A stretch of DNA of 64,000 nucleotides from Podarcis filfolensis (Eukaryota), in assembly GCA_964270895.1 (NCBI GenBank), contig OZ185439.1. The stretch is one strand, 5' to 3'. The notes under the pieces are model-generated. The model saw nothing but the letters and a program-made list of their open reading frames with translations, had not been told where the DNA came from and ran no database searches. Below are positions 1 through 24,617 of the stretch, one piece after another. Position 1 is the stretch's first letter. Every line of letters begins with the position of its first letter. The translations under genes and the position numbers were made by a program.

Positions 1-555
1 TGCAGCCCAGAAGAGAGAAAGCTCTCTAAGGGCTGATTCACACATGCATTTGTATCACTCAATCTCTCATCACTTGGGCGGTTCACGGTTTAATGTGAGA
101 ACCACCTCTGTTGAAACAGATTGTTTTTGATGTGATATCAGGAGATATGAAAGTTCTTTCCCTGGTGATCCATGATGGCAGTTTCACACATGCAAGGTAT
201 CGATGGGGTGAGTCATCACATGCAATCAGCAAGTGACAAAACACATTTTATGATCTCACCACAAGCCTGCCTTCATGGCTTGCATTTACCATGGAATGTC
301 ACAAGCGATCACACTATCCTGATGGGCTTCAGAAACAAACCCTGAAAGTATAATTTTGTTTGATACAAAGTATTTGAGGGTGCTGACTCTTATGAACGAG
401 TGTGAAGCATTCAGCCACAGAATACAGGTACCAACCATTTTGTGTGTGTTCAATTGGCATGTGACCACTGATGTGTGCACTATTTTTGCCCCCCCACGTT
501 CCGCTGGCATGCATGATGACCTGGAACGCAATTCCCACACAAATGGGGGTTATCT

Positions 556-1186
556 CATAGAATCATAGAGTTGGAAGAGACCACAAGGGCCATCGAGTCC
601 AACCCCCTGCCAAGCAGGAAACACCATCAGAGCACTCCTGACATATGGTTGTCAAGCCTCTGCTTAAAGACCTCCAAAGAAGGAGACTCCACCACACTCC
701 TTGGCAGCAAATTCCACTGTCGAACAGCTCTTACTGTCAGGAAGTTCTTCCTAATGTTTAGGTGGAATCTTCTTTCTTGTAGTTTGGAACCATTGCTCCG
801 TGTCCGCTTCTCTGGAGCAGCAGAAAACAACATTTCTCCCTCCTCTATGTGACATCCTTTTATATATTTGAACATGGCTATCATATCACCCCTTAACCTC
901 CTCTTCTCCAGGCTAAACATGCCCAGCTCCCTTAGCCGTTCCTCATAAGGCATCGTTTCCAGGCCTTTGACCATTTTGGTTGCCCTCCTCTGGACATGTT
1001 CCAGTTTGTCAGTGTCCTTCTTGAACTGTGGTGCCCAGAACTGGACACAGTACTCCAGGTGAGGTCTGACCAGAGCAGAATACAGTGGCACTATTACTTC
1101 CCTTGATCTAGATGCTATACTCCTATACTCCTATACTCCTATACTCCTATACTCCTGTACTCCTATACTCCTATTGATGCAGCCCA
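556..1186 (-). mobile_element. CR1 LINE, 5'-truncated 3' fragment (end of ORF2 plus 3' UTR)
   Basis: Minus-strand ORF 627-1091 ([18 protein letters not shown]...[13 protein letters not shown]...[11 protein letters not shown]) is the typical CR1 ORF2 C-terminus. The CATAGAAT terminal repeat (reverse complement of ATTCTATG) is at 556. Confidence 0.95.
1116..1171. repeat. Tandem 8-mer (TATACTCC) x7 inside the CR1 5' end
   Basis: Seven consecutive units read directly; the sixth is TGTACTCC. Confidence 0.95.
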
Positions 1187-1637
1187 TCTGTATGAGAATG
1201 AAGAACAAAGAGTGCCTCTGATCATATTCAGAACAGAGGCGCTGTAATCTTAATCTTAATCCCTCCCCAAACAGCTGGAATTAGGGGCACAGCTTCCAGG
1301 CAGGGCAAGTTTAGGTTAACATGGTTCTCTGTCAGATGAATAGTAAGGCTGCACCAGTGCTTCTTGTCTACTTTGTGTTGCAAATATAAAGAGAAATTGA
1401 CCTAGCCAAGTTCACACGCCTGCTCCACCATGAAATATCACATGATGGACTCAGTCAGCTGACCATATCTCATCTCATCCTAATTTACACACAAGGGGTT
1501 AGAGCCAGAGTTTGCTCCCATTTGTGGTAGCAGCCCCCCAGGACAGTCCCATCAGTGGGAAAAGAGGGGGAGAAGTGTTATCTGCACATTGATCTTTCCC
1601 CTGAAGCCCCCAGCACCACTTACCATACTGTTCCAGA

Positions 1638-2120
1638 CAGTGCCGGATTTATGTATAGGCTAAGCAGGCTGAAGCCTAGGGCCTCTAAATCTAGGGGGCC
1701 TCACCAGCCCTCCCGGTCCCCAGTGGGAAGTCTCCCCTCTCCCAAAATTCCAAACCCAATACTTCATGTGAGGGCAGGACAACTCAGGCCTCTAAATCTA
1801 GGGGGCCTCGCCAGCCTGCCCGCTCCCCAGGGCCGCAGTCTCCCCTCTCCCAAAATTGTAAACCCAAGACTTCATGCAAGGGCAGGGCAACTCAGGCCCA
1901 GCAACTATTAGACTCAGGGCTAGTCAGTGGGGCCCAATTTAAAGCAGTGGGGCGCAACTTGATTTTTTTTTGTAGGGCCCCAGTTCACAGCCAAAGTCTG
2001 CAAAATCTTATAGATATAAATGAAATCCAACTAGATTGTCCTGGTGCACAGGCCCCCTTAGGAGTGGTCCACAGGGCCCAAGTTGGCCTAATTGCTGAAA
2101 TTGCCTTAAGGTCAGCCCTG
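1638..2120. mobile_element. Degenerate non-autonomous DNA transposon (hAT-like MITE)
   Basis: Starts CAGTGCCGGATTTA and ends TAAGGTCAGCCCTG (imperfect inverted termini, about 9/14). GC-rich interior; no TSD seen. Confidence 0.35.
1680..1894. repeat. Tandem duplication of a 107-108 bp unit
   Basis: GGCCTCTAAATCTAGGGGGCCTC...CAACTCA occurs at 1680-1786 and again at 1787-1894 with scattered mismatches. Confidence 0.9.
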
Positions 2121-2769
2121 ATGAAACTGTGCAGGGGTTGGACTGACAAGCCCTGCACCTTCTAGGTCCCTGGTGTCACCATTCAGAATACAGACTCAAG
2201 GACTTGTTATGGAAATAAAGGGGGGCACTTATTGGAAATCAGTTTTGTCACCTCTTTCCCCCAAAACCCCGAGACAATGAGCCCAGACACCTTTTATTCA
2301 CAGTCGTATAAGCACTACACTACAGCATGGCCATAAACTTGTATGTTCAACCACTGAAATATGCACCCAATATGTAGCAATGGAGATTTATGTTACTGCT
2401 TTATGAATGAACACTGTGTTTTATGAATGGACTCTGTATTTTGTGAATTACCTAAGAGCCACCAATAGGGAGCTCTAGAATCTGACAGCTAACTAATTGG
2501 GTACTACCAAACAGCGACCCCTATTGCTGAAAGCAGGTAACCAGCAGAGAATGCTTCAGCTCAGCCTTTGCACTGTTGACTAAACACCCCCTGCTGTGCA
2601 GATAATGGAGAAAGTTTGTAAATTGTATCCCTTCTGGCATCCTAGCTAACTCTATTACACTGGTGTAAACCCTGGTGTACCAGAAGCACATAATAGCAGC
2701 AAATAAAATCCGCTCATGCGTCAGCAACTGATAAGACTTGTCAACCAGTCCTTCCAAAGTCTTCCTAAA

Positions 2770-3010
2770 TTATAAAGCTCTAAAACACAGGCCAAAAGAG
2801 AGCAGGTCTGGGAAGAGTGAGGCATACAATGGGCACCACCAGTGAAAAGGCCCTGCTCCATGTAACTCCTGTCCTATCATTTGATAGAGTGCCCACTTGC
2901 CCTCATTCTTGACATGGAATGCTCTCTATTGGAGTCTCCAGGTCCAGTACAAAGACCATATGAAAGGAGAGCAGGGACCTTGAAGTTCCCAACAGCTGTT
3001 AAGCCAGCAA
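2770..3010 (-). mobile_element. Old L2 LINE 3' fragment
   Basis: Motifs GAAAAGGCCCTG and GGAGAGCAGGGACC resemble the matching part of the young L2 at 8264-10150; highly diverged. Confidence 0.4.
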
Positions 3011-3092
3011 GCAAGCGCACAGGTCACCTTGGTCACAGTCAGGACACCTATGTCCTGGCCAGGCCTGCACCCAATCTTCTTTTTGTATAATC

Positions 3093-3392
3093 TTGTTTGT
3101 CCTCAGTAACCAAAATTATACTATTAACATATACAAGCAGAAAAGTTGTTTTCCTTCATTTGCAAGGAACCGTACAAAACAAAGTGGCACCAATAAAGAA
3201 AAATTCCAGGGTGGCAACAGAAAGCAAACTAAAAATGCTTTTGCAGTTCATCAAAACTATCCAGCAATATCGAGTTATAGGAAAACTGGTGCTATTAACA
3301 GTAACCCTTCTAGTTGGTTAATTGGTTCGGCAACTTCCATGCACATGACATGTGATGCTAATTATTTTCCCCAAGAGTTAAATGATAACTAA
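3093..3392 (+). mobile_element. Ty1/Copia LTR retrotransposon gag-protease relic
   Basis: Peptide SSWLIGSATSMHMTCDANYF resembles the Copia protease motif W[IL]IDSGA[TS]xHM[TC] with D changed to G. Upstream KSCF..FARN resembles an eroded zinc knuckle. Confidence 0.5.
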
Positions 3393-5056
3393 TCAGAGGC
3401 ATCTACAGGAGAGCTATGAGATTCAGGTGAGGGTCAGATGCCTTGTCAATCCCAGCAGGTATAAAAGAGGACGACCAGGCCTGCAGCCTGCCAAGGTCTG
3501 CCGCCTGGTGCCAGCCATTTTTCTTCTAATAAAATAATTAGCAATGGGGAAAAAAACCCTGCATTCAGTTTAATCAGATTAATACAAAACCAACCCATCA
3601 AATTGCTCAGTTCAGCTGTGACTCTGTTAAAAGATCAGCAACAAACCTGAATGTAATGAAAACAAAGGCAGATAAACACATTGAAATTGTAGCTGAGAGG
3701 ACAGAAGCATTAGGGTAACACCCTTGATGTTGTGATTGATGTAGTGGGTGACACGGCACATGGAGCCTGACAGTGACTGAACAATACCTATCTGAGTCTG
3801 TGCGCACCCAGGCTTGCCAATGTGAACTAAAGCTAGAGAGGATCTGCCTCGCAGCCACATCCCTAAATCCAGCGTTTGCAGTGGCAAATGTCATCTCTAG
3901 TTTCCTTTACAAGACAAGGTACCTATTAAGTTTTACTCCCTTAATGGCCTTTCAGGTCCTTCTTAGACCTTCAAATTCTGTCGTACTGGGCGACTAAAAC
4001 AATCTTGCTTGATCACAACCGCTGCGAGTAGTGAAGATTATGGTTTGGCAAGCATCACGAAACCAAAACTACCCTTTTTTGTTTACTGTTTTCCTGTGAT
4101 AATTTATGAAGGCAAATATTCAGACTGAACACAGGAGGGGGGGGGAGGAACCACCCCGGTGTGATATAAATATACCTGCACTTCCCACAGCTTGGCAAGC
4201 ATCCTAAATCGACTGGTACCTGAAATTATGCCAACCTGTGCAGCACATCTGAATTTGAAACTAATCTCTTATTTACAATCAAAGGGTCTGCAAAGCTGTT
4301 GCTTGTAACACAGCTTATTATTCTGCATTAAATATTGTTGTTGAAACTGGTGTTTGCAAGGGCCAATTAGTATATTTATTTAATAAAAATTAGCCCTGCT
4401 ATTTTAAGTGAAAAGCAAGAACGTAAACACAGTTGTGAGTTGCACCCCTCTTTCTGCAGTTTTGCAGAGCAATCCTATGCACAAGGAGCTGGTACAAGTG
4501 TGGCTAGCACAAAGCCACAGCAGACCCTGAGCCCAGGGGAGAAGCAGCAATAGCAGCTGAGCCCGCAGAGCAGGAATTCACAGAGCAGCAGCGCAAAATA
4601 CAGAACACAGGAGCAACTGGCATCACCATGGCAATCTAGGTTAAATGTTGACAGGCACAGGGGAGAATCCTTGAGCCCCCAGTCATGAGGCCATACAGAG
4701 ATAGCCTGAAAAGCCCGGGAAACAGCAAAAAGAAATGTAAAGGGGGGGTGCTACTTGATGACCCTTCCTGATGTAGATCTTCAGCTAACCCTTTCTTCCG
4801 TGGCTGAAAGGGGGGAGGGAGGTCCATTTTGTGGCTCACCTCAGGTGCCAAAACGTCTTGGACCGACCATGCCACAGCCCCACCAGTGTGCAAGGAAGGA
4901 CCTGAGCAAGGCAGGGCCCCCAGGCATGCAGCCAGATGGGCTCCCCTTCTGCCCAGTCATGCTCCCATGGCCTGGTCCAGCAGGCTCTTATGTTTTCATG
5001 TTCTAAGCCTCTGCCAGCTGATGGCAGCTGATGCTGAGGACCTGCTACTTACCTGG

Positions 5057-5374
5057 TGTTATGTATTCAGTGGTCTCTGTTTGCCTGAGCTTGAGTCTGA
5101 ACTAAGGAATCTGAGCCCCTGTGTTCTGATTCGATACCTGATATCCATTCACAGAACATTTCAGGATTTGGGCCTCTGCCATTGGCGCTTCAACTCTGAG
5201 TCATGATTGCAGCTTGGAAGTTTAGACAGCCAATCACACTGGGAGTGGGAGTGGCCCAGGCCTTCAGAAATGTATATAGGCAAGCGCTTTGCCCATTGTC
5301 CTGTTCTGTTAGTTCAATAAAAGTTCTTGCTGTTATCACTGTGTCTTGCATTGTGTGAACTCACCTACACTTCA
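5057..5374 (+). mobile_element. Solo LTR (318 bp) of an LTR retrotransposon
   Basis: TG...CA termini (TGTTATG...CTTCA) and perfect 5 bp TSD CCTGG (5052-5056, 5375-5379). Internal CCAAT 5230, TATATA 5273 and AATAAA 5316 are in U3-R order. Confidence 0.85.
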
Positions 5375-7559
5375 CCTGGTGTGTTTTTTACTGCTGAGGA
5401 TTATAGCTGCTACTGGTTTGTGGCTGCCAGTGCACAGTTTAGCACTCTTGGTAAACCATGATCCTCAGCATAGCCTGGCCCTGCTGGGGATCCCTGGAAT
5501 CCTATGCTGCTAATCTCAGTGGATCTCATTAGAACCGTCTTCTTCTTTTTGCACAAATGCCAGGATTTGGAAGGGGGGCTGTGTGTGTATGTGTAAAAAA
5601 AAAATAAAACCTTGTATGAAGACTTGCCCATTCTCTCTGAAGCTGTGATGACATTCAGTTTGATTGCGAGTTACACCACATTAAAAAGAAGAAGATATTA
5701 TTCTCAGAGAGGCTGTTAAACCTGATATGCCTACATTTATTTACTTTTGCAATATCTTTGCCATGTGTATAGTGATACAGTGAATTACTAGCTTGTGGAA
5801 TGAATGAAAATAATGTATGTCTGCGTTAAATGTCAGAGGAAATTGTGGCACTGATTAATAAGTAAAGAATACATAATTTAGAAGGGGGGAATTGCTCCTT
5901 TACAAAAATTGCTCTCTCTGTATGTGTGTGTGTAAATTCTCACTCAGCCTTTCACAGAATGAACAGATTAAAATGAATGCAAGATGGGACATGTCAGGGA
6001 ACCAGTTTGCTCTTTTTAGTCAGAGTATTCATATTTCAGAATAACAAGTTCTTAATATTTCACTTGCAATGGACTATGGATGTTTCCATCATTACCTGTT
6101 TTATTAGGATCTGGGATATGAAATAGATATGTTCTGTTTTGTTTCAAAGCTATCATCAATGTGAATGAAATGACAACTCAAATTACTATTTTTTTAAAAA
6201 AAAAAGTATGGAGAGAAATATTTTTAACTTCAACCTTTTGACTTATTCCGTTTTCATATTGTAAGGTTTCATTGATTTTTTTCAAATCTATAACATGAGT
6301 GCATTCAATGCAAAGGATAACCAGTGAGACCTCTCAGTCTCGGGCTCGGAAACGACTTGATGGACAACTTTTAAATGAGACCACACATGGACAGAACACC
6401 TTGAGAGGGAAGATGCCCTCAGGACCAAAATGTATATTCAATTAACACTGAAGCAGAGTGATGCTATTTCTCTTTGAGATGGGATGTCTGGGGGGAAACA
6501 GGACATCATGTGCAATAGGGCTGATTTATGCTCTGCATGGAAGGTGCAGCTGTGTTTGCTGCAGGAGATGTATCTGTTACTATGTGGTTTCCTAGTACAA
6601 ATCCAGCACATGCTTACAAATACACAGATCTCCTAATTATATGGTAGGGTTGTCACCTGGAGGCATGTGGTGACGCCACATCATGGCGTGTGTATTGTAG
6701 GAAGTGTGAATCAGTTCGTAGGGCTGATATACCCATGGATGGACATCACTTGGAGATTGCAGCCTCAAGTGATGACCTGCAAGTGTGAACAGACCATTGC
6801 AGGTCAAACACTGCTTGAAAGAACTAGGTGGAGCTTTTAAGGACGAGTGCTTTTCAGTGGAATTAATTCACATGCTCAGCTGGGAGTCTACAGTTCTGTT
6901 CAGTTGTTGTCTCCCCACCGTCCCACTATGCAAATATCAGGGGGAGCTACGGCAAGACTGCTAACCCATCTCCCTCCCCTGTGCCCCCACCAGCATTCCT
7001 GGAGCCCACCATGTGTTGGGGGCTGGACTTTTGAAGCAAAGAGCTGTTTTTGCCAGAGTAGGTGTCCTGTGCGATTTAGAAAGCTGGGAGAACAGAGTTA
7101 AAAATCATGTGGAGAGCCTATTTGCACACAAGAGTCCTCCCTCTACAGATGTTCACTCCCCCCCCAATATGTGGGGTGTGTGTACAGGAACAGTGATGAG
7201 GCCATGTGGAAGGGGGCAAGGACAATGGGCTGCCATTCTGCCTTCTTCACAGTGCTCTACACCTAGTGCAATTCTGGGGCAATGTGTGTGGGGTGAACAG
7301 TGACTCAAAACAGTGGGGGATCTCCAGAGAACATTCTGCAAAGTGGCTTCCTTTTTCTAGCAGGGTGAGAAAAAGAAAAAAATATTGGGAATTTATTTAC
7401 TTTATGAATAAAAAGCATTTGTATACCTCTGTGTCATAAAGATATACATATCACAGAGGCCTACAGCAACAAAAACATAAAACCCTACAATAAAACCATT
7501 AAAAAGTTGAAAACAGACATTGGATGTTCCCAGAAACATGCTTGGGAAATTTTCTCAGC

Positions 7560-7810
7560 TGCTGATAACATCAAGGTTGCAGGCTTGATATGGGACACCT
7601 GCATATTCCTGCACTGCAGGGGGCTGGGCTAGCCAAATTTGGCCCTCCAGATGTTTTGGGACCACAACTCCCATCATCCCTAGCTAACAGGACCAGTGGT
7701 CAGGGATGATGGGAACTGTAGTCCCAAAACATCTGGAAGGCCAAGTTTGGCCCTGCCTGGGCTAGATGATCCTAAGGATCCGTTCCAATGCTACAATTCT
7801 ATGGTTCTAT
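7560..7810 (+). mobile_element. tRNA(Ile)-derived SINE with CR1-type 3' tail, interrupted by a MITE
   Basis: TGCTGATAACATCAAGGTTGCAGG resembles tRNA-Ile. The tail TTCCTGCACTGCAGGGGG...CTAGATGATCC...ATTCTATG matches the CR1 3' end at 62893-63053. Confidence 0.7.
7633..7757. mobile_element. Palindromic hAT-type MITE nested in the SINE
   Basis: Same family as 58091-58226. Flanked by direct repeat TGGGCTAG (7625-7632, 7758-7765); the left terminus is eroded. Confidence 0.85.
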
Positions 7811-8263
7811 TTTAAACTCCCTATTTTTTATTATTTTTTATTGGGTGTCTCCTGATCTATTTCCCCCTTTTTATCTTGTGTCTGAGTATTCCCTCCAGGA
7901 TTAGTGGTGGGGCATCTGCCACAGGGGATGGGTTAGGCTGTGGTGAGGTGCATGGATGCACTGTCACAGCCAATGAGACATTCTCACTGGTGCATCTGCA
8001 CAGCCCTGACCTCCCCACTGCCTCCCTGCCCCTTTATTGATACATGGCAGTGATGTCACTGCCAGGAGGCTATAGCTGCAGCTTTGCCAGATGAGCCCTT
8101 GGAGTTCTTCTAAGGTCCAGTTGGCATAAGGGCAGGACATAGGGAGGAGAGCCTCTAATAGACCTCAGCACCTGGGCAGTCCTTCAGCCAGCTACTTGCA
8201 AGGGGTATTCTATACTGAATCGAGTGCATGACTGGCCTTAAATAAATACAGTGGTACTAGTTC

Positions 8264-10150
8264 TTTTATTTATTTATTAAATAATAATAATAATAATTTT
8301 TTATTTATACCCCACCCTCCCCAGCCAAGGCCGGGCTCAGAGCAGCTTACAAGCAATAATAAAAACAAGATGAATGATTACAACTTAAAAACAAAAATAA
8401 AAAACAACATTAAAATAATGGAACATTAAAATATTAAAATGTAGCCTCATCGCAGGAGGAGAAGGAAAAGAAAAAAGAAAGAGAGGGAGGGAGGGAATCA
8501 AATTGGCTCCAAGCCAAAGGCCAGGCGGAACAACTCTGTCTTACAGGCCCTGCGGAAAGAAATCAGATCCTGCAGGGCCCTGGTCTCATGAGGCAGAGCG
8601 TTCCACCAGGCCGGAGCCAGAGTTGAAAAGGCCCTGGCTCTGGTTGAAGCCAATCTAACTTCCTTAGGGCCTGGGACCACAAGGGTGTTGTTATTTATGG
8701 ACCTTGAGGCTCTCCGTGGGGCATACCAGGAGAGGCGGTCCCGTAGGTACGAGGGCCCTAGGCCGTGAAGGGCTTTAAAGGTCAAAAGCAGCACCTTAAA
8801 TCTGACCCTGTACTCCACCGGGAGCCAGTGCAGCTTGAAAAGCACTGGGTGAATATGCTCCCATGGCAGAGACCCCGTGAGGAGCCTCGCTGCAGCATTC
8901 TGTACCCGCTGGAGTTTCTGGGACAGCTTCAAGGGCAGCCCCGCGTAGAGCGAATTACAGTACTCAAGCCTGGAGATGACCGTCGCATGGATCACTGTGG
9001 CCAGGTCGGGGCGGGAAAGGTAAGGGACCAACTGCTTGATGCGGCGAAGGTGGAAAAATGTCGCCTTGGCTGTTGCTGTAACTTGCGCCTCCATGGAAAG
9101 GGAGGCGTCAAGGATTACACCCAAACTCTTAATGGAAGGCAATGGCACTAATTGGGCCCCCGCAAGAGAAGGGAGTTGGTCCCTCATCCCCATGCCATCC
9201 CGACCTAGCCATAGGACCTCTGTCTTTGAAGGATTTAGTTTCGATCGGCTCCCACGAAACCATCCAGCCACAGCTTCCAAGCAACTGGTCAGTGTGTTCG
9301 GGGCCGAGTCGGTGTGGCCATCCATCAGCAGATAGAGCTGAGTGTCATCAGCATATTGGTGACAGCCCAGTCCAAAGCTCCGGATAATCTGGGCAAGGGG
9401 GCGCATAAAGCTGTTAAAAAGCATCGGGGAGAGAATTGCGCCCTGCGGCACTCCACACACCAAGGAGTGGCGCGACGACATTTCCCTCCCTAGTGCCACC
9501 CTCTGTCCCCGACCAGAGATAAAAGAGCACAACCAGTTATGGGCTATGCCCTGTATCCCCACGTCTGCGAGGCGGTGGTCCAGAAGATCATGATCGACCA
9601 TGTCAAAGGCTGCTGACAAATCTAAAAGGATCAGCAGTCCTGACCCGCCTCGATCCAGTTGTCTACAGAGATCATCTGTTAGGGCAACCAGAGCCGTCTC
9701 TGTCCCAAAACCAGGACGGAAACCGGACTGAAATGGATCTAATGCCGATGTTTCCTCCAGAAACCTACCAAGCTGTTCAGCAACCGCTCTCTCAGTTACC
9801 TTACCCAGGTATGGAAGATTTGAAACTGGGCGGTAATTGGATAGGTCTAGGGGATCTGATGAAGTTTTCTTTAAGAGTGGACACACCACTGCTTCCTTCA
9901 GTTCCCCTGGGAATGTCCCCGTGTCAAGGGACAAATTGATAATTTCAACCAGGGGGGTCCGCGCAACATCTGGACACTCCCTAATCAGCCAAGACGGGCA
10001 CGGATCAAGGAGGCAGGTGGTGGGCCTCCCAACTTGGAGGAATCTATCCACATCAGTAGGGAGTATCCGATCGAAATGGTCCAACACTGGACCTGAAGTC
10101 AGTCGAGGGGCCTCCAGTTCAGTCACTGTATCTAAATTGGCAGGGAGATT
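8264..10150 (-). mobile_element. Young 5'-truncated L2 LINE
   Basis: Uninterrupted RT ORF, a 3' UTR ending ...GGCTGGGGAGGGTGGGGTATAAAT, and an A/TAA-rich tail at 8264-8306. Homology appears to start near 10150. Confidence 0.93.
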
Positions 10151-10177
10151 AAAAAAACCACCTCTTTTAATCTTCAC
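8498..10177 (-). CDS. L2 ORF2 reverse-transcriptase domain and C-terminus (559 aa, endonuclease domain absent)
   Basis: RT motifs NYRPVSNLP, LLILLDLSAAFDMVDH, GVPQGAILSPMLFN, YADDTQLY, LNPSKTE, VQNAAARLL. No stops. The first ~10 codons are probably flanking DNA. Confidence 0.9.
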   Translation of the reverse strand: MKIKRGGFFNLPANLDTVTELEAPRLTSGPVLDHFDRILPTDVDRFLQVGRPTTCLLDPCPSWLIRECPDVARTPLVEIINLSLDTGTFPGELKEAVVCPLLKKTSSDPLDLSNYRPVSNLPYLGKVTERAVAEQLGRFLEETSALDPFQSGFRPGFGTETALVALTDDLCRQLDRGGSGLLILLDLSAAFDMVDHDLLDHRLADVGIQGIAHNWLCSFISGRGQRVALGREMSSRHSLVCGVPQGAILSPMLFNSFMRPLAQIIRSFGLGCHQYADDTQLYLLMDGHTDSAPNTLTSCLEAVAGWFRGSRSKLNPSKTEVLWLGRDGMGMRDQLPSLAGAQLVPLPSIKSLGVILDASLSMEAQVTATAKATFFHLRRIKQLVPYLSRPDLATVIHATVISRLEYCNSLYAGLPLKLSQKLQRVQNAAARLLTGSLPWEHIHPVLFKLHWLPVEYRVRFKVLLLTFKALHGLGPSYLRDRLSWYAPRRASRSINNNTLVVPGPKEVRLASTRARAFSTLAPAWWNALPHETRALQDLISFRRACKTELFRLAFGLEPI

Positions 10178-11734
10178 ATTTGCAAGGGGGGAAGTTCTGA
10201 ATTATGGCACCTTGATGGCTGTGGCAGACCACATCAACCAGAAACTATGCAACCATTTGTTTCATGCGGCGTGTGTGAGTCTTGCCCCTGTTAGAAACCA
10301 GTAAAATACTTATTCCTCATTATCAGTATGACTATAGCGTATGTGGAAATCATAGCACACACATTATTAGAAGGCAGAGCTCATAAGTCTGTGTATCAAA
10401 TGTGATTATGGTGTGGGCAGGTGGAATGACTGCAGGGGTGTGCTCACTGGGCCAGTTTAACACATGAATGAACATTTGGAAAGACAAATGATCTTTTGGA
10501 ATGGGCATGCTGATTCCATCAAAGGCCAATACCTGGTGTTAGAGATTGAGAAAGCGGCGGAACAAAATAAAATAATACACATAGACCTCTTAATCCAACA
10601 GGACATTGATGTACACGGAAAGTCAGAATCCATTCTCTGGGCATTATGGCTATCTGCTGTGCTTTACAGTTCGGAATCTGATTGCATTGCTCTTCCAGTG
10701 CTGAGAATTTGATTCGCGTTCTCAGCCTCCGCTGCAAATTCCATAGACTGACTGAAGCATACAGTGACCATTTCCCTCTGGTTGTTTCTCGACAACTGGA
10801 ACACAGCTAGGCGTCGCACCTTCTTCCAGCGCTGTAAATCAAGGAGTTAATCGCCCCTAACTGCCAAAAATCCAAAGGCATGATCGGGTTTCATCAAAAC
10901 CTTTGTTACATTAAACATCTCAGTCAGCTCTCATTATCCAGATTACGCAACCCTGTTTCTGGAGCTGATTGGCACAGGCTAGTGTTGCATCACTTTAATA
11001 ACAGAAAAATAAAGTTGTACGGCAGACAAGACTCCCAGGGGCCATCTAAAATAACCGGCTAGTGCCAAAGCAAGATCCAGCCACCCAAACAGTGAATGTG
11101 AAGAAAACAACCACCAAGTAATGAATGGAGGATATTTTTAAACTGAGCCAGAAATTCAGGACAAAGATGAAAAGCCGAGGAGATCTGCAATTTGGAAGCC
11201 CAACAGAGGCTGCTCCTAAGAGACTAGCCGAAAAGTAAGAACTATTGGGTTGTAGGTTGATAGGGCTTACAGGGCATGTTATAGTGATATCTGAATGCTT
11301 TTCAATTACTATATGAAGGAAGGAGCTGCTATTACTAAAACAGGGAGCAGAGATGGGAAGGGAGCGACGGAAGTGAATTAATCCAAGTGAAAATATCATT
11401 TGGATTAATACAATTTGTATAATCTTTTGTATAAAGGTCATTTAAATGAAAATGCTATATTGCTCTCGGGACCTCTCTACACACTTGTAGCCCTGCACTA
11501 GCATCTTTGGACCTACCTTGTTTTGGAGTGGAATCATTTCATTCCAGCCAGGGTTCCCCTGCAGAAGCAGATGGCAGGAGACACTGGTGGCTGGCAGTGT
11601 GGCAACATTGCCTTGACTTTATGTTTCCTACCCTGCTGCTGGGAAAGGGACAGCAAAGTGGACATGGTACATATGCTCTGGCAGAGTCAAACTGGTGCTC
11701 CTGCCAGCAGGAAGTGAAAGGAACCCTTCTACAG

Positions 11735-11872
11735 CAAGGGTGGCTAACCTGTGGCCCTCCAGATGTTGCTGGACTACAACTCCCATCACCCCTGACCTTT
11801 GGCCATGCTGGCTGGGGCTGATGGGAGCTGGAGTCCAATGATGTCCAAAGGGCCTCATGTTAGCTGCCCTTT
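11735..11872. mobile_element. Palindromic hAT-type MITE
   Basis: Termini CAAGGGTGGCTAAC / GTTAGCTGCCCTT and core CCCTCCAGATGTT...ACTACAACTCCCATCA. Partial TSD TTCTACAG / TTCTAAAT. Confidence 0.75.
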
Positions 11873-12519
11873 TTCTAAATCCATGGCTCCCTTATCCAGA
11901 GCTGCATCCTGGGAATTCTCCCTTCATCTACACAAAGACTTGGTATCCACTTTCCCCATAAACTTGTTCTAATTTTGCCACCCAGCCGCTCTCATTTCCC
12001 ACTCTGCTTTGACAACTGTCTTGTATAAAGTTTAATTGCCTCTCCTGAAGCCAAGCGCAAGGAGTGGCCCTTGCTATCTTTAGGGCTGCAGTGTGTCATT
12101 TACTACAAAGCCCCAGAATTGTTACCTTTTTCTTTGTAGGCTCCAGACCAAGCTGTTTTACAAGGCAATAATTTGTGGTATCAAAAAATTGCTTCTACAA
12201 ACCACATCCAGATGTCACATTCAACCAGTGAATGAAACTCTTTGCAATAATAATCCCTGTAGCTTTCACTTCTTTTTGGATGGCATCAAAAATGCTAAAT
12301 TACACTTTCTTTGTTTTCATGTATATATCAGTAGCAGTTGTGCTAAACAACAGTCATATTTTTGTGTGATCTGTTAATACTCTGAATGACTTGTGCAGTC
12401 CAAAAAAACAAAACAAAAACCCCTTACATATGTGATAGGTTTCGTCATGGCCAACTTTCAGATTATTTTGTGTTATAGTTAATGCTCTGGTAACCTCCCG
12501 TTTACACTACTGAAAAGGC

Positions 12520-18985: not shown

Positions 18986-21362
18986 AAAATGCAAATTTGA
19001 TGCTAAATATATTTGAAAATCTGCTACAGAAATGAGCAACAATAAATATTTGACGGTATGAAGAGCCGGATAGTATGGAGTTTACAAGCATAAAATTAAT
19101 CTCACCCTAATTATGCAGGACCACTGGGTGACCTTAAATCCCAATTTATAATATATATCACCATTGCAACCACCATTTATCATATGGACAAAATAATACT
19201 GAACCTATATGAACACTTAGGAAAAGTGAACACGTTGCTGCATTTGTTTTGTTGTTGTCGTCCATAGTTATGCTTATCCTCCAAGAGCTTCTATGTAAAA
19301 TGGCTCAAGTATGATTTTCAGACAAGACTGACTCCATACCTCTTAGCTAGAAATTAAGCTGTTCCACATGACATAAGCTTTTGAATTCATGACACTGTTT
19401 ACACATCCATTGCCAAAAAGCTAAACACGCACAAACTTTCAAAATGCGAAGAAAACTTGCTTCCACTTGCATGCAGTTTTCCTCCCTCCCCAAAAATCAT
19501 TTTAACTTTTGGTTATTCAAAACAATTTCTCTCTAAATTAAAAGAACAAAGTACTGCAACCAATAGACAAAAACAAAACAGCACTGGTTTTTTTGAGCCA
19601 AGGAACACCAGAGTACGACAGAACATATTTGTTGGGGCAAAGCCTCTCTGGTTTTGCTGAAGATATTGTGAGACAGTGGTGTGTGTCCATGTCATTGTGA
19701 GTTCATTGTGTCTCTCTGCCTGTGGATCACATATGATGGTTTTCATCCACACAGCCCCTGACTGGTGGCACTAGTGCTGTTTCTGCTTGCGGAGTGCAGC
19801 AGAGGCGATGGATCACTCTTGCTTACCAAGCAAGGCAGGGGGAGTGCGGAGGCAGTGGGGAGGCTGGCATGGTACAAATGCCCTGTTCCTACCCCTTTCC
19901 TGTCTGATAAGCAACCGTGACACACCTGCTGGTAAGCTAGTATAGCAGCTCCCTGCTACCTTGTAAGCTGCTTTTATTTCCAGGGACCCTCTCCTCTCTC
20001 TGTGCCTGCTGCTGGGTTGTTGTTGTTGTTGTTTTTGCACAATTTTTGTATTTGCTGGTGCAGTGCTACCCCCTCCCCTCCTTGTCCAGGCTGAGCATGC
20101 ATAGGATATTGAGCAATAATTGGAACTTAGGATGGCTCTGCCCATCTCCAGAGCTGACATTCATGTGAAGTCTTCCCTTCCCCAGAAAACCGCAAAGATA
20201 GAGGCTGTTGTTGTCTCTCGAGCAAACAAAGAAACACAAAGTGACTTACTTGGGAAGGGATTTTTCTTATACAGATGGACTGAGGCTTTGATTCCATTGA
20301 AGCATGCACATTCTCTTGAGGATTGGAACTTAAAAGCACGTAAAAAATATTAGAGAACATCATTTTTGAGCTAGCAGCAATGGTTGGGAATTGCATTTTC
20401 TTTCTTAAAAACAGCTTTATGTCTGGGCTACTCATCTCCGAATCGCACTGCTGTAGAGGAAATAGGGCAGTGTTCAATCGGAAGGATCAGCTGCTGTGCT
20501 GTTGGCTACTCTGTGGAGGGCTTTAAATCAAAATGCCACTTTGCACGTTAAGTTTAAAAGGGAAATGCACTTTCTGCTTCAATCCGGGCTGGTTTTCTAA
20601 CTTTGGATATCTGTATAAATGATAGAAAGTGAGGAGCACCCCATAAGCTGACATTTATTTAAGTAATACACCAGCAATTGTACTGAGGGTGGGGGGCATA
20701 AGTCGAAACATGATTTTTTTTTTAAATGATATTTATTGGAAAAAAGGTGTGTGTTTTTTAAAAAAATAAAAAATAAAACCATCATTCTCAGATTCCCCAC
20801 TTTCAATACCTTCTTTCTTTGACCTCCTCCTCCTCCCTTTTCTTGTATCCTGATTAATAATAATCGCAGCAAATTCTTTCCTTAATTCATAATATTCTGT
20901 CATTACATTACCTTAATTCTATTTTCATCTTATCATATAGAAACCTTAAAGTTTAAAGCTTAAATCTTATTTTTACCAACTTCTCCTAACCATAACATTC
21001 TTACCTAATTCTTTAGACATTTTTACAAGAGCCAAGTAATTTCATTTCAACATTTTTCTAACATTCATTAATTTTATAGAACAATCTTAATTATATATAT
21101 AAAAAAAGAGAAAAACAATCCAATCTTCATCCAGCATCCCTTCCTCCTGGTCCCGGGTTTTGTCAGTCCTTTTTAACCTATTAATCTAGCACATTAACCT
21201 GGTAACCTTATATCCGAGGCCCTCAAGTCTCTTCCATGTCCCTTCCGCAGCTCTTCTTCATATTTTCCTTTCATTCTCGGGAACTCCAGCTTGGTAATGT
21301 TTTGGACCCTTTTCAACAAATCAGCCCCTTTTCCATAGACCAGACTGGACTCCATATGGTAT

Positions 21363-21800
21363 TTAAAAACATGTTCCAGATTCCCTCAAAAATTGAGAGC
21401 CCCCACAGCTCCAGACATCAGACGGCCCATTGCCAGACTCGAGAAGTCCAAATCTCTCTGTAAAGGGGGGGTCTATCCAGCCCCCCATTTCCAAACCTAA
21501 CCAAACTTTATCTTTCCAAGTCTGGTTTATTCCAAGTTCATTTGTCAACTCCAAAAATTTATGTTCCTGCTGGGCCGCTGCTCCCTCCGTCTCTGGCACC
21601 CAAGATTCAGCAACATCCTCTTCTTTCAGTTGTTCTGTCATGGCACACTCCTGTTTTAGTTCCTGGGTGGGCTCCATATAATTTCCCACTACCTGTTCAA
21701 GGGTTCTGGCCGCATTAGTCATTAAATCCGTCTTCTGGCTTAACTGATCCAATAGGGCATTTATTTTACAGAAAGCACCCAACAGTGCTTCTGAAGACAT
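21363..21800 (-). CDS. Unrecognised 145 aa ORF of the L1-like element (putative ORF1-like, coiled-coil N-terminus; probably extends to 21194 across a frameshift)
   Basis: ATG-initiated ORF MSSEALLGAFCKINALLDQLSQKTDLMTNAARTLEQVV..., helical and E/K/Q-rich. The +1 frame stays open 56 more codons. Confidence 0.55.
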   Translation of the reverse strand: MSSEALLGAFCKINALLDQLSQKTDLMTNAARTLEQVVGNYMEPTQELKQECAMTEQLKEEDVAESWVPETEGAAAQQEHKFLELTNELGINQTWKDKVWLGLEMGGWIDPPFTERFGLLESGNGPSDVWSCGGSQFLRESGTCF

Positions 21801-22439
21801 TGTCCTGCAAGGTCACAAATCCTTTCCCACGGTTGTAATCTGAGACAGCTGCAAGCTCCCAGGAATTAGTTACAATTTCACAATCCCCCTCTAGGGGGAA
21901 AGCTTCTAGTTGTTCTTTCTTTTGATAACAATAGCAACAAAGTTTCTTTTTTGTGATATTTTGTCCATATTTGTTCTTTTAAAATGCGAAAGGAAACAAT
22001 GGATTCACTATGTTTCTCTTCTCTTAACTATCTGTCAGAGACATTTGTTTCTGGTCAATGAGCTTCAAACGTCAATTCTGACACCCCGCTCCAGGATCAG
22101 GACGGTGGAAAATTACTTTGCTTTAAACTCACTTCTGCAGGTTTAAACAGCCCAAAAAAGATCCCCCTTCTTCTCCTGCTGCCGAAGGGGGGTTCAGCGA
22201 TTTTAAATGATGAAAGCCAATCCTTTAAAAGTGATTTTCAAAGCTCTAGTTTACGTTGTCTTTGCTTTGTTCTGGCTACAAGGAAACAGAAGGCTGACTT
22301 CCTGTTTAGACCTTCCCGTTTCAGTACCAAATTAGGGTAAATTTTAAGTCCAAATTCCTTTCTATTTCGCCAGTTCTTAATTCAAGTCCAATTATTCAGT
22401 GTTTCAGTACTCACGGGTGGTTATTTTAGATGCCAAATT

Positions 22440-22742
22440 GTCCCAGGAAAAAGGCAGCGCTCTCCGGTAACGGCTATACGGCTCTGCTCCGCAGAAAAAG
22501 CAATTGACTCACAGCACCGCGCCACTTCCCCCTCGTTGCTTCGGAGCCTGTTAGTGGGTTCCTTTGCGGGTTGGGGGGCGCTAAGGGTGCCCGCCGAGTC
22601 CCACGGTCACAGGCTTCATCCGCCTGTGATTTCCAGAAGGGTCCCCGCTTCGCCGTAGCGGAAAAGACCCGTTTCATGCGGAGCTGGTCCCTCCAATTCA
22701 GAGGGAGTCCGCCATTACTGATGGCGCCACCCCGGAAGTCCC
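22440..22742 (-). promoter_or_regulatory. CpG-rich internal promoter of the L1-like element
   Basis: Dense CpG. ETS motif ACTTCCGG at 22739-22732; YY1-type cores at 22709-22717 and 22721-22728, within 35 nt of the 5' end. Confidence 0.6.
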
Positions 22743-22889
22743 CATAAGTCGAAGACATGATTTGCAGGTTTAAGGTTCTAGATTCAATCCATAGCATCCT
22801 GGAATGATTGGGAATGATTGGGGAACCCCTCTCTGGATCCCTGGAGAGCCACTGCAAGTTGGTGTAACTCAGTAGTGCTTACTTCTGAC

Positions 22890-23257
22890 TAAGGATCGGC
22901 AAATCTGTCAATTTCAGTTCCTTTCAGCTTCTAGTTTTTCCAGTTTCCAGTTCAGTTCTCCACATTTATGCAACAGTGTTTTATTTTTCTTTAATGTAAG
23001 CAAGTCATTGTGAAAATTCACAAGCACAATTCTCCCACAGTTCTCCCATTTTTGTATGCAGTTCTGCCTAAGACACACAATTTTGCAAAATACTTTCACC
23101 TAATATAATGCATCCTTGTATGTTATTTTCACTGATATGTGTATTTATCTTCACTCTGTGTTCTACTTCATGCATTGTGTCCTTGTTACTTGGCCAGAGA
23201 ACTATACTGCAAAATTCAGATAAGTACAAATTTCAAACAGGGTCTGGGTTCCAGTTG

Positions 23258-23293
<36 letters not shown>

Positions 23294-23378
23294 ACGCACA
23301 CACACATACATATGAAATTGTGACTGAAGTAGGTTCACCTTTAAAAGCAAACTGAATCAAATTTCTGCCCCCTCCCTC
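22890..23378. mobile_element. Old non-autonomous hAT-like element, interrupted by a TG/CA microsatellite
   Basis: Degenerate TAGGGATG-type termini (TAAGGATCGGCAAAT / ATTTCTGCCCCCTCCCT). Similar AT-rich body near 46310-46480. Confidence 0.45.
23260..23311. repeat. (TG)n followed by a (CA)-rich microsatellite
   Basis: Read directly. Confidence 0.95.
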
Positions 23379-24617
23379 CTTCTCAGTAGACATGTATAGG
23401 ATTACACTGCTAGGGAAATGATTGTGTTCAAACATAGTCTGGAATAATGGCAGCAGAATTTGCCCATTACGTTATATCTCAGAACCTTGTGGTGAAGCCA
23501 AAAGGTGGAAAAAAAATATAGGGCACTCTGACCTGGCTATTTCAAAAGAAACTAAAGGCAACAGAGGAGCTTAAGTAATGTTAAAGTTTTGTTATCAAAG
23601 TAAAAGCCTGATCTCACATCTTTTGACCCAAACAACTCATTGATTAAGCAATTAATATTATTGTGATCCCTTCGCCCACCCCACCCCCTTTCCCATTATC
23701 TTTAATTGCCCCTTTCTTTAGAAAGCAGTGAAATCAGAGAGCAGAACAACTTGTTTGGAAACTTTTTAGCTTCTGCAATAAATAAAAACCTCTCCCTAAC
23801 TGGGCCAATTCCCTTTCTATTAAACAAATATATTAATTGTCTAAAGAGAAGAATGACCCTTTCAAATGAAACATAATTAGGTAATTATGTAATTAGACTG
23901 TTTTCTAAAATGCACATTATGTGCTAAGTAGGCAAGACTTGCTTCTTGATTGGCATTCCAGCCTATCCTTCAATTATTCCATTGTTATAAATGTTCCTTT
24001 ATAAAAAGGCTTTCCTATAGCCTTGTCCACCCCCCCCCAAACACTGCCAAATAGAGCTTCAGTGGATGGCAACACACCTGCTGTTTGGTCAAATTATCAT
24101 GATTTTTTTGTGGTGTTTGCCCAGAAGTGGCTTCTACTGTACCTCTGAAATGGGCAGGCCTTGGTATTGATCAGGGCAGTTCATTTGAGTTCTGTTGGGT
24201 TTCGCTGTCTGCGTACACATGAGGTAGGTTCATTTTGTCACAGTGCACTTTTGTATGTAGCAGTTAGCAGTTGTATGCACCTTTGTGCAATAACATCATC
24301 TAAAGTGTCAGCTACCATCCCTGTGGTCTGTACATGCAGATGGACGTGTTTTCAAACTAGTGTGCAAAAGTGTTCTCTATTCCCTTCCCCTCAGTTAGTG
24401 ATTCCACTGTGTGTGTGTGTGATTGTGTGTGTGTGTGTGCCTTTCAAAAGAGAGGAGCTGGAAACTGGTGTGTTGATATTCTGATATACAGATAATATAT
24501 AGCACTATACGGAGGTGGCTCAATTACTGTACTGCTACCTATTTTGCCTGTTTCATTCACTGACAACAGGGTGAAGTGCAGTGGCACAGTCCTACAATGC
24601 CAAAGTATCCTGCTTTT

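Follow-up and report, generated by a model that had tools for sequence, protein, structure and literature searches.

What is a ~2-kb insert that has both ends of an L1 insertion and carries only one open reading frame (ORF)? The insert in question lies on the minus strand of a 64-kb stretch of Podarcis filfolensis DNA (GenBank assembly GCA_964270895.1, contig OZ185439.1), which we refer to as the window and whose positions we use throughout. An earlier reading of the letters alone (the sequence-only reading) had proposed that the insert belongs to a non-autonomous family that lacks ORF2 and borrows that of L1, as opposed to being an ordinary 5′-truncated L1. Our analysis supports this view: high contig depth, colinear contigs from other copies, intact ORFs of ~200 amino acids elsewhere and homology to the L1 ORF1 protein (ORF1p) lead us to conclude, with a probability of about 85%, that a high-copy lacertid retroposon family arose from L1 when ORF2 and most of ORF1 were lost, and that the insert is one of its old, inactivated copies. 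As judged from its sequence, the family appears to be a HAL1-like, ORF2-less L1 derivative with a shrunken ORF1, and it most likely spreads by borrowing L1 machinery.

Anatomy of the insert

The insert is polyadenylated, spans 22742–20714 (2,029 nt, or ~2.03 kb) and sits between the two copies of a target-site duplication (TSD), one at 22743–22760, adjoining its 5′ end, and the other at 20697–20713, adjoining its tail. The duplication reads CATAAGTCGAA[G]ACATGA: CATAAGTCGAA is repeated exactly at 20697–20707 and 22743–22753 and is followed by ACATGA, with a 1-nt gap before it in the left copy. Its length is 18–21 nt, as the copy at 22743–22760 might be longer by as many as three T's that could equally belong to the tail. 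In the window the complete 18-mer is found a single time, whereas chance would yield 0.04 matches at three or fewer mismatches. The G missing behind 20707 is present in single-copy junction contigs of two DNA sequencing runs labelled as different organisms (X1, organism A; X5, organism B), which indicates that the TSD was originally perfect and that the 1-nt loss is private to the source genome.

From its first letters, GGGACTTCCGG at 22742, the insert runs through an ETS-type motif, ACTTCCGG, at 22739–22732 and a YY1-like motif, AATGGCGG, which ends at 22709. Its first 300 nt (22443–22742) have a G+C content of 62% and a CpG observed/expected ratio of 0.85, compared with 0.28–0.45 in the remainder of the insert; together, the motifs and the CpG content make it plausible that this candidate internal promoter is an L1 promoter. 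The leader is 942 nt long (22742–21801). All of its frames are closed, and its remainder beyond the CpG-rich end (21801–22442), in which three-frame translation gave stops in every frame, is matched by colinear contigs of other copies. An ATG at 21800 opens the ORF region, behind which a 480-nt 3′ untranslated region (UTR; 20724–21193 up to the tail) with 72% A+T carries AATAAA at 20737–20732 and ends in a run of ten A's at 20723–20714. The sequence-only reading had described the same parts (a TSD, a CpG-rich 5′ end, a ~940-nt leader, an A-rich 3′ UTR, AATAAA and A10), all of which we reproduced.

Three further observations concern this region. The donor-like hexamer GTGAGT occurs three times in the leader (minus-strand starts at 22512, 22414 and 22132), compared with ~0.5 occurrences expected per strand of 2 kb, and the family transcripts may be spliced. 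We rejected a short interspersed element, as a scan of 20000–23500 with Rfam, ranked by E-value, gave only chance-level matches and no tRNA-, 7SL- or 5S-derived head of the kind transcribed by RNA polymerase III. A (GT)16 microsatellite at 23260–23292 accounts for the chance-level matches to mir-297 and mir-466.

Copy number and colinearity

We placed the contigs of X1 and X5 on positions 20100–23200, which drew 2,043 contigs from X1 and 3,446 from X5. The left flank was covered by a single contig with a depth of 6.5 in X1 and 89.7 in X5. Across the interior of the element the summed contig depth was 510–12,085 in X1 and 13,836–231,045 in X5, giving interior-to-flank ratios of ~80–1,900 (median ~330) and ~150–2,600 (median ~550), respectively. 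Ratios of ~80–2,600 rule out a single-copy or low-copy sequence, and with it one outcome that would have spoken against a family. Within the 64-kb window itself, the element is present once.

The contigs derived from other copies (85–99% alike) overlap one another over 20781–22742, with two short gaps at 22004–22014 and 22191–22352. They span both the junction between the leader and the ORF and that between the end of the ORF and the 3′ UTR, such that no ORF2-sized segment is missing here relative to the family and there is no room for an ORF2. In one contig of another copy (record 16 of run X15), the likeness ends exactly at 22742, the 5′ end of the element. Moreover, depth did not fall toward the 5′ end but reached its maximum there, which fits mostly full-length copies and possibly also a 5′ end common to other families.

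These observations bear directly on the possibility that a full-length L1 lost its interior in a one-off event confined to this locus, at the time of insertion or afterwards. Internally deleted L1s do exist, and a Podarcis protein described below, an ORF1–ORF2 fusion, is of that type. A one-off deletion is nonetheless contradicted by the colinearity of other copies across both junctions, by the several proteins at other loci and in other assemblies that have the same ~200-amino-acid ORF, and by a depth 80–2,600 times that of the flanks; we regard it as very improbable.

Two features of the DNA contigs stood out beside the element and within it. The right flank (22908–23200) is itself a high-copy repeat, with a depth of 870–1,570 in X1 compared with 6.5 for single-copy sequence, and many contigs there skip variable lengths between ~22917–22977 and 23047–23116. 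Within the 3′ UTR, the bin containing a segment of ~40 nt (21037–21076) was 2–10 times deeper than the neighbouring bins.

The family ORF and its disruption in this copy

A word search with the 145-amino-acid ORF that is open in the window recovered two relatives with 77–79% identity, and repeating the search with the longer of these recovered two more. Of 1.84 billion representative proteins, only seven were matched by a profile built from four members. The family as we define it comprises P0001, P0002 (201 amino acids, from Podarcis lilfordi), P0003, P0004 (199 amino acids, 33% identity), P0005 (212 amino acids) and P0007 (215 amino acids); P0006 is the read-through of a deleted copy, and P0008 was rejected as a low-complexity false match. 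Intact relatives, found in P. lilfordi and further assemblies, are 196–215 amino acids long, and the 90% cluster of P0007 holds three further members of 215 amino acids. P0005 and P0007 are only ~30% identical to the rest of the family and keep its start, stop, length and C-terminal motif, RD[LI]RASD[LI]R.PG (P0002–P0007; 21194–21240 in the window, minus strand). Lineages that are only ~30% identical have thus retained an open ORF that begins and ends at the same places and is of the same length. The motif is faintly like RRASTSGPPG near the N terminus of lacertid L1 ORF1p, a likeness that is not significant (tblastn E 5).

Searches for recognised domains returned little. Pfam assigned no family to the 145-amino-acid ORF, Transposase_22 matched neither the window ORFs nor six relatives even at permissive E-value cut-offs, a sequence search of the PDB with the family profile gave no family for the ORF, and the ESM Atlas gave none for the window ORF (best score 0.85, a lead only). 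Pfam, the PDB and the library of 1.84 billion proteins gave no relative for the C-terminal half, and scans of metagenome contigs yielded no match either to P0002 or to an exact 23-nt pattern taken from the conserved ORF end. The AlphaFold2 model of P0002 was poor, with a confidence (pLDDT) of 38 and a single N-terminal helix, the remainder being of low confidence.

Comparison with these relatives explained what had looked like a short ORF. The sequence-only reading had described one ORF; the ORF region stands, and the 145 amino acids do not represent the whole of an ORF that in relatives runs to ~200. In a tblastn search of the window, residues 1–113 of P0002 matched one frame with 77% identity and residues 111–201 matched another with 85%. 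The front piece, 145 amino acids at 21363–21800, matches the relatives over residues 1–~113. Relative to intact members, the frame then shifts beside a run of seven C's at ~21465–21471 (the tblastn match switches frame at element nt 1292–1299), and the back piece continues in the shifted frame over 21194–21464, ending with the C-terminal motif, RDLRASDIRLPG, and the family stop codon at 21196–21194. The continuing frame is also interrupted by a premature stop at 21388–21386. At position 21388, other contigs of the family in X1, X5 and X15 show another letter over all or nearly all of their depth, indicating that this stop is private to the present copy. With both a frameshift and a stop, the copy cannot make the protein. 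Subfamilies differ by a whole block in the middle of the ORF: in record 19 of X5, a contig from another copy, 145 unlike letters stand in for 21320–21465, in agreement with the variable, indel-rich middle of the protein alignment.

Does the ORF have a role at all? The main rival to our interpretation accepts the same family and the same trans-mobilisation by L1 and takes the ORF to be a decaying relic, with the RNA reaching the L1 ORF2 protein (ORF2p) by its poly(A) alone, as the RNAs of processed pseudogenes and SVA do. Consistent with a relic, the middle of the protein is highly variable, with indels and the 145-nt module swapped in one contig, the protein as a whole is predicted to be largely disordered and no longer has the RNA-binding domains of ORF1p, and the frame is broken in this copy. 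A decaying frame would not, however, be expected to retain its start, its stop and a length of 196–215 amino acids at ~30% identity, nor to conserve both termini, including RD[LI]RASD[LI]R.PG; four members of 215 amino acids fall in one 90% cluster, and the chance that ~200 random codons stay open is ~7e-5. We therefore judge a relic to be unlikely, and favour an ORF that the family has maintained.

Relationship to L1 ORF1p and absence of ORF2

The family profile also found P0009 (Podarcis raffonei LOC128406054, 340 amino acids; E 1.6e-4), which linked the ORF to L1. Residues 188–319 of P0009 match residues 752–882 of human L1 ORF2p (E 3.9e-15; PDB 8sxt), and over its first 187 residues it shares 50% identity with P0010, a P. 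lilfordi protein of 274 amino acids. P0010 has a 119-residue helix (residues 54–172), modelled by AlphaFold2 with high confidence over most of its length, and a motif, NLRVRAVPE, that we read as the RNA-recognition motif (RRM) signature of L1 ORF1; its structural neighbours in the Atlas carry Transposase_22, which we take as a lead only. From these sequence features, we take P0009 and P0010 both to be lacertid L1 ORF1p sequences, P0009 deriving from an internally deleted L1 in which ORF1 is fused to ORF2.

When six family members were aligned with P0009 and P0010 by hhalign, family residues 1–124 matched L1 ORF1p residues 52–199 with a probability of 96.4% (E 1.3e-9), and BLASTP of P0002 against P0009 gave an E-value of 7e-7. 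From this homology we conclude that the N-terminal half of the family protein derives from the coiled coil of lacertid L1 ORF1p and that its start codon matches an internal methionine of that protein. The homology stops before the RRM, and both the RRM and the C-terminal domain (CTD) are absent from the family protein; tblastn of the first 60 residues and of the RRM part of L1 ORF1p against the element gave nothing significant. The sequence-only reading was thus correct in finding no canonical L1 ORF1 RRM motif. Its suggestion that the cargo may be novel applies to the C-terminal half, an orphan, and fails for the N-terminal half, an L1 ORF1p coiled coil.

The reported absence of RT (reverse transcriptase) and endonuclease was borne out as well: Pfam matched neither on the ORFs of the element, tblastn with the ORF2 part of P0009 found no match in it, and all frames of the insert are closed outside the ORF region. 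An autonomous L1 was rejected, no APE endonuclease or RT ORF2 having been found in the insert.

The remaining alternative is a processed pseudogene of a cellular mRNA from a CpG-island promoter of the housekeeping type. The ETS motif at the transcription start site, a YY1 motif ~25 nt downstream, the poly(A) signal, the tail and the TSD would fit a retrocopied mRNA too, as would the presence of one copy in the 64-kb window. Such an origin is opposed by the high copy number in the DNA runs, by the homology of the ORF to L1 ORF1p and by the lack of any matching cellular gene family among the 1.84 billion representative proteins. Of the explanations weighed here we consider it the least probable.

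Two other sets of sequences came to light in these searches. A minus-strand ORF of 559 amino acids at 8498–10177 in the window carries an RVT_1 domain (E 1.8e-32). We rejected it as an L1: among PDB entries, R2 and human L1 ORF2p lie at about the same distance from it, which makes it a long interspersed element of a non-L1 kind. A DNA comparison found no sequence common to this ORF and the element. Two Podarcis muralis predictions annotated as TRIM39-like E3 ligases, P0011 and P0012, have 60% identity to ~45% of the L1 ORF1p coiled-coil query; they could contain an L1 ORF1 fragment, within or fused to a TRIM gene model, or could reflect plain coiled-coil likeness.

Age and expression of this copy

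X1 and X5 each contained contigs crossing the junctions of this insertion (20100–20739 and 22713–23200), whose flanks differed by ~1%. The insertion is therefore common to at least two other labelled organisms and is not recent.

For expression we had one raw RNA run, X23 (12.8 million reads), together with the X15 runs, whose identity as RNA is a guess. In X23, 356 reads were placed, 347 of them only partly on the stretch and 242 at less than 90% likeness. None was at least 99% alike to this copy, and we saw no transcription of it in that run. The reads concentrated at the 40-nt segment described above (21037–21076) and at 22560–22600 and were unlike the sequence beside these places; the 21037–21076 segment is probably common to another repeat that is more abundant or more expressed. 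Contigs of X15 covered most of the element at 86–99% likeness, which is compatible with expression of other copies and is not proof of it.

Several considerations weigh against the family interpretation, or limit how far it reaches. The summed depth of contigs does not equal a copy number, and other families with the same 5′ end may contribute to the 5′ excess. Coiled-coil homology is open to inflation by composition, although the shared motif EAL..AL.K.N..LEQL..KTD is specific. The evidence of L1 descent comes from the ORF. Constraint on the ORF was judged from database proteins, which are present there because they are open and so carry an ascertainment bias, and the AlphaFold model of the protein is poor, as its pLDDT of 38 attests. 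Finally, evidence for family RNA is thin, with the X23 reads being mostly partial and X15 being RNA by guess.

A model for mobilisation

How might such an element spread? In the model that we propose, RNA polymerase II (Pol II) would transcribe the element from its first base, through the internal CpG-rich promoter with its ETS and YY1 sites. In human L1, YY1 positions the start site. The RNA would be polyadenylated, and the ORF2p of a resident autonomous L1 would copy it in trans by target-primed reverse transcription, as suggested by the tail and TSD of the insert and by a T-rich nick site. The nick implied for the bottom strand, ATTT/GC, would offer a T-rich primer to a poly(A) template. 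The least certain step is the part played by the small coiled-coil protein, which probably assists by joining trimers of L1 ORF1p, or might alternatively act by keeping the RNA on ribosomes near nascent L1 proteins.

Structure prediction provided one indication on this point. We folded two chains of P0010 residues 52–160 with residues 1–100 of P0002 and obtained a co-assembly score of 0.48, compared with 0.00 for the best control; the runs agreed on at least 85% of contacts, and the partner had a pLDDT of at least 62. Of 78 solved complexes, 51 attained the co-assembly mark, as did 2 of 108 mismatched pairs; at 0.60 or less, where our score lies, only 5 of the 78 attained it, together with all 4 of the passing mismatches. 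The prediction lends weak support to the idea that a P0002-type protein may co-assemble with L1 ORF1p.

A bolder version of this idea is that the protein acts as a coiled-coil-only adaptor, co-trimerising with L1 ORF1p as it emerges from its own RNA and thereby recruiting or poisoning the L1 particle, in which case the family would be a parasite of L1 that targets cis-preference by protein mimicry. We consider this speculative and somewhat more doubtful than a relic ORF. If it were true, the combination of a fast-evolving middle and a conserved RD[LI]RASD[LI]R.PG would point to an arms race in which the opponent is L1 or host restriction.

Comparison with HAL1 and other L1-dependent sequences

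HAL1 is described as a non-autonomous derivative of L1 encoding ORF1p alone, with several independent origins reported in mammals (PMC5753468; PMC13756887). The mammalian elements and the lizard family are alike in being L1-derived and non-autonomous, in lacking ORF2 while keeping an ORF1-derived gene, and in being ~2 kb long, polyadenylated, flanked by TSDs and presumably mobilised in trans by L1. With HAL1 as the yardstick, we found L1 descent (for the ORF only), the absence of ORF2 and a repeated family with TSD and poly(A), but not a complete ORF1p (coiled coil, RRM and CTD; Transposase_22), the ORF being ~200 amino acids long. The family differs further in its squamate host, hence an independent origin, and in its protein, which starts at an internal methionine of ORF1p, keeps the coiled coil without the RRM and CTD, and has an orphan C-terminal half that finishes in a conserved motif of its own. 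Searches of a papers library for HAL1 or ORF2-less L1 in lizards listed no paper that connects them; a Repbase or Dfam entry may already exist.

With the lacertid autonomous L1 represented by P0009 and P0010, the element shares the coiled-coil sequence, the poly(A), the long TSD and the T-rich nick site, whereas it lacks endonuclease and RT as well as the RRM and CTD of ORF1 and measures 2 kb in place of ~6 kb. SVA elements and processed pseudogenes resemble the family in being Pol II transcripts with poly(A) and TSDs that are copied in trans by ORF2p. Unlike it, they are not derived from L1 and have no conserved reading frame of ORF1 origin.

Taken singly, the copy described here is dead and ordinary for its family. 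For annotation, the family would account for several Podarcis 'hypothetical proteins' and for a substantial class of repeats. The half-L1s that we found in the literature come from mammals only and keep a whole ORF1p, to which the squamate family would be an independent counterpart. By keeping a trimerising coiled coil and an orphan tail over a long divergence, the lizard family would amount to a natural experiment that lays bare what a passenger RNA must have to exploit L1, and would make it testable whether the coiled coil of ORF1p alone can give access to the L1 machinery or interfere with it.

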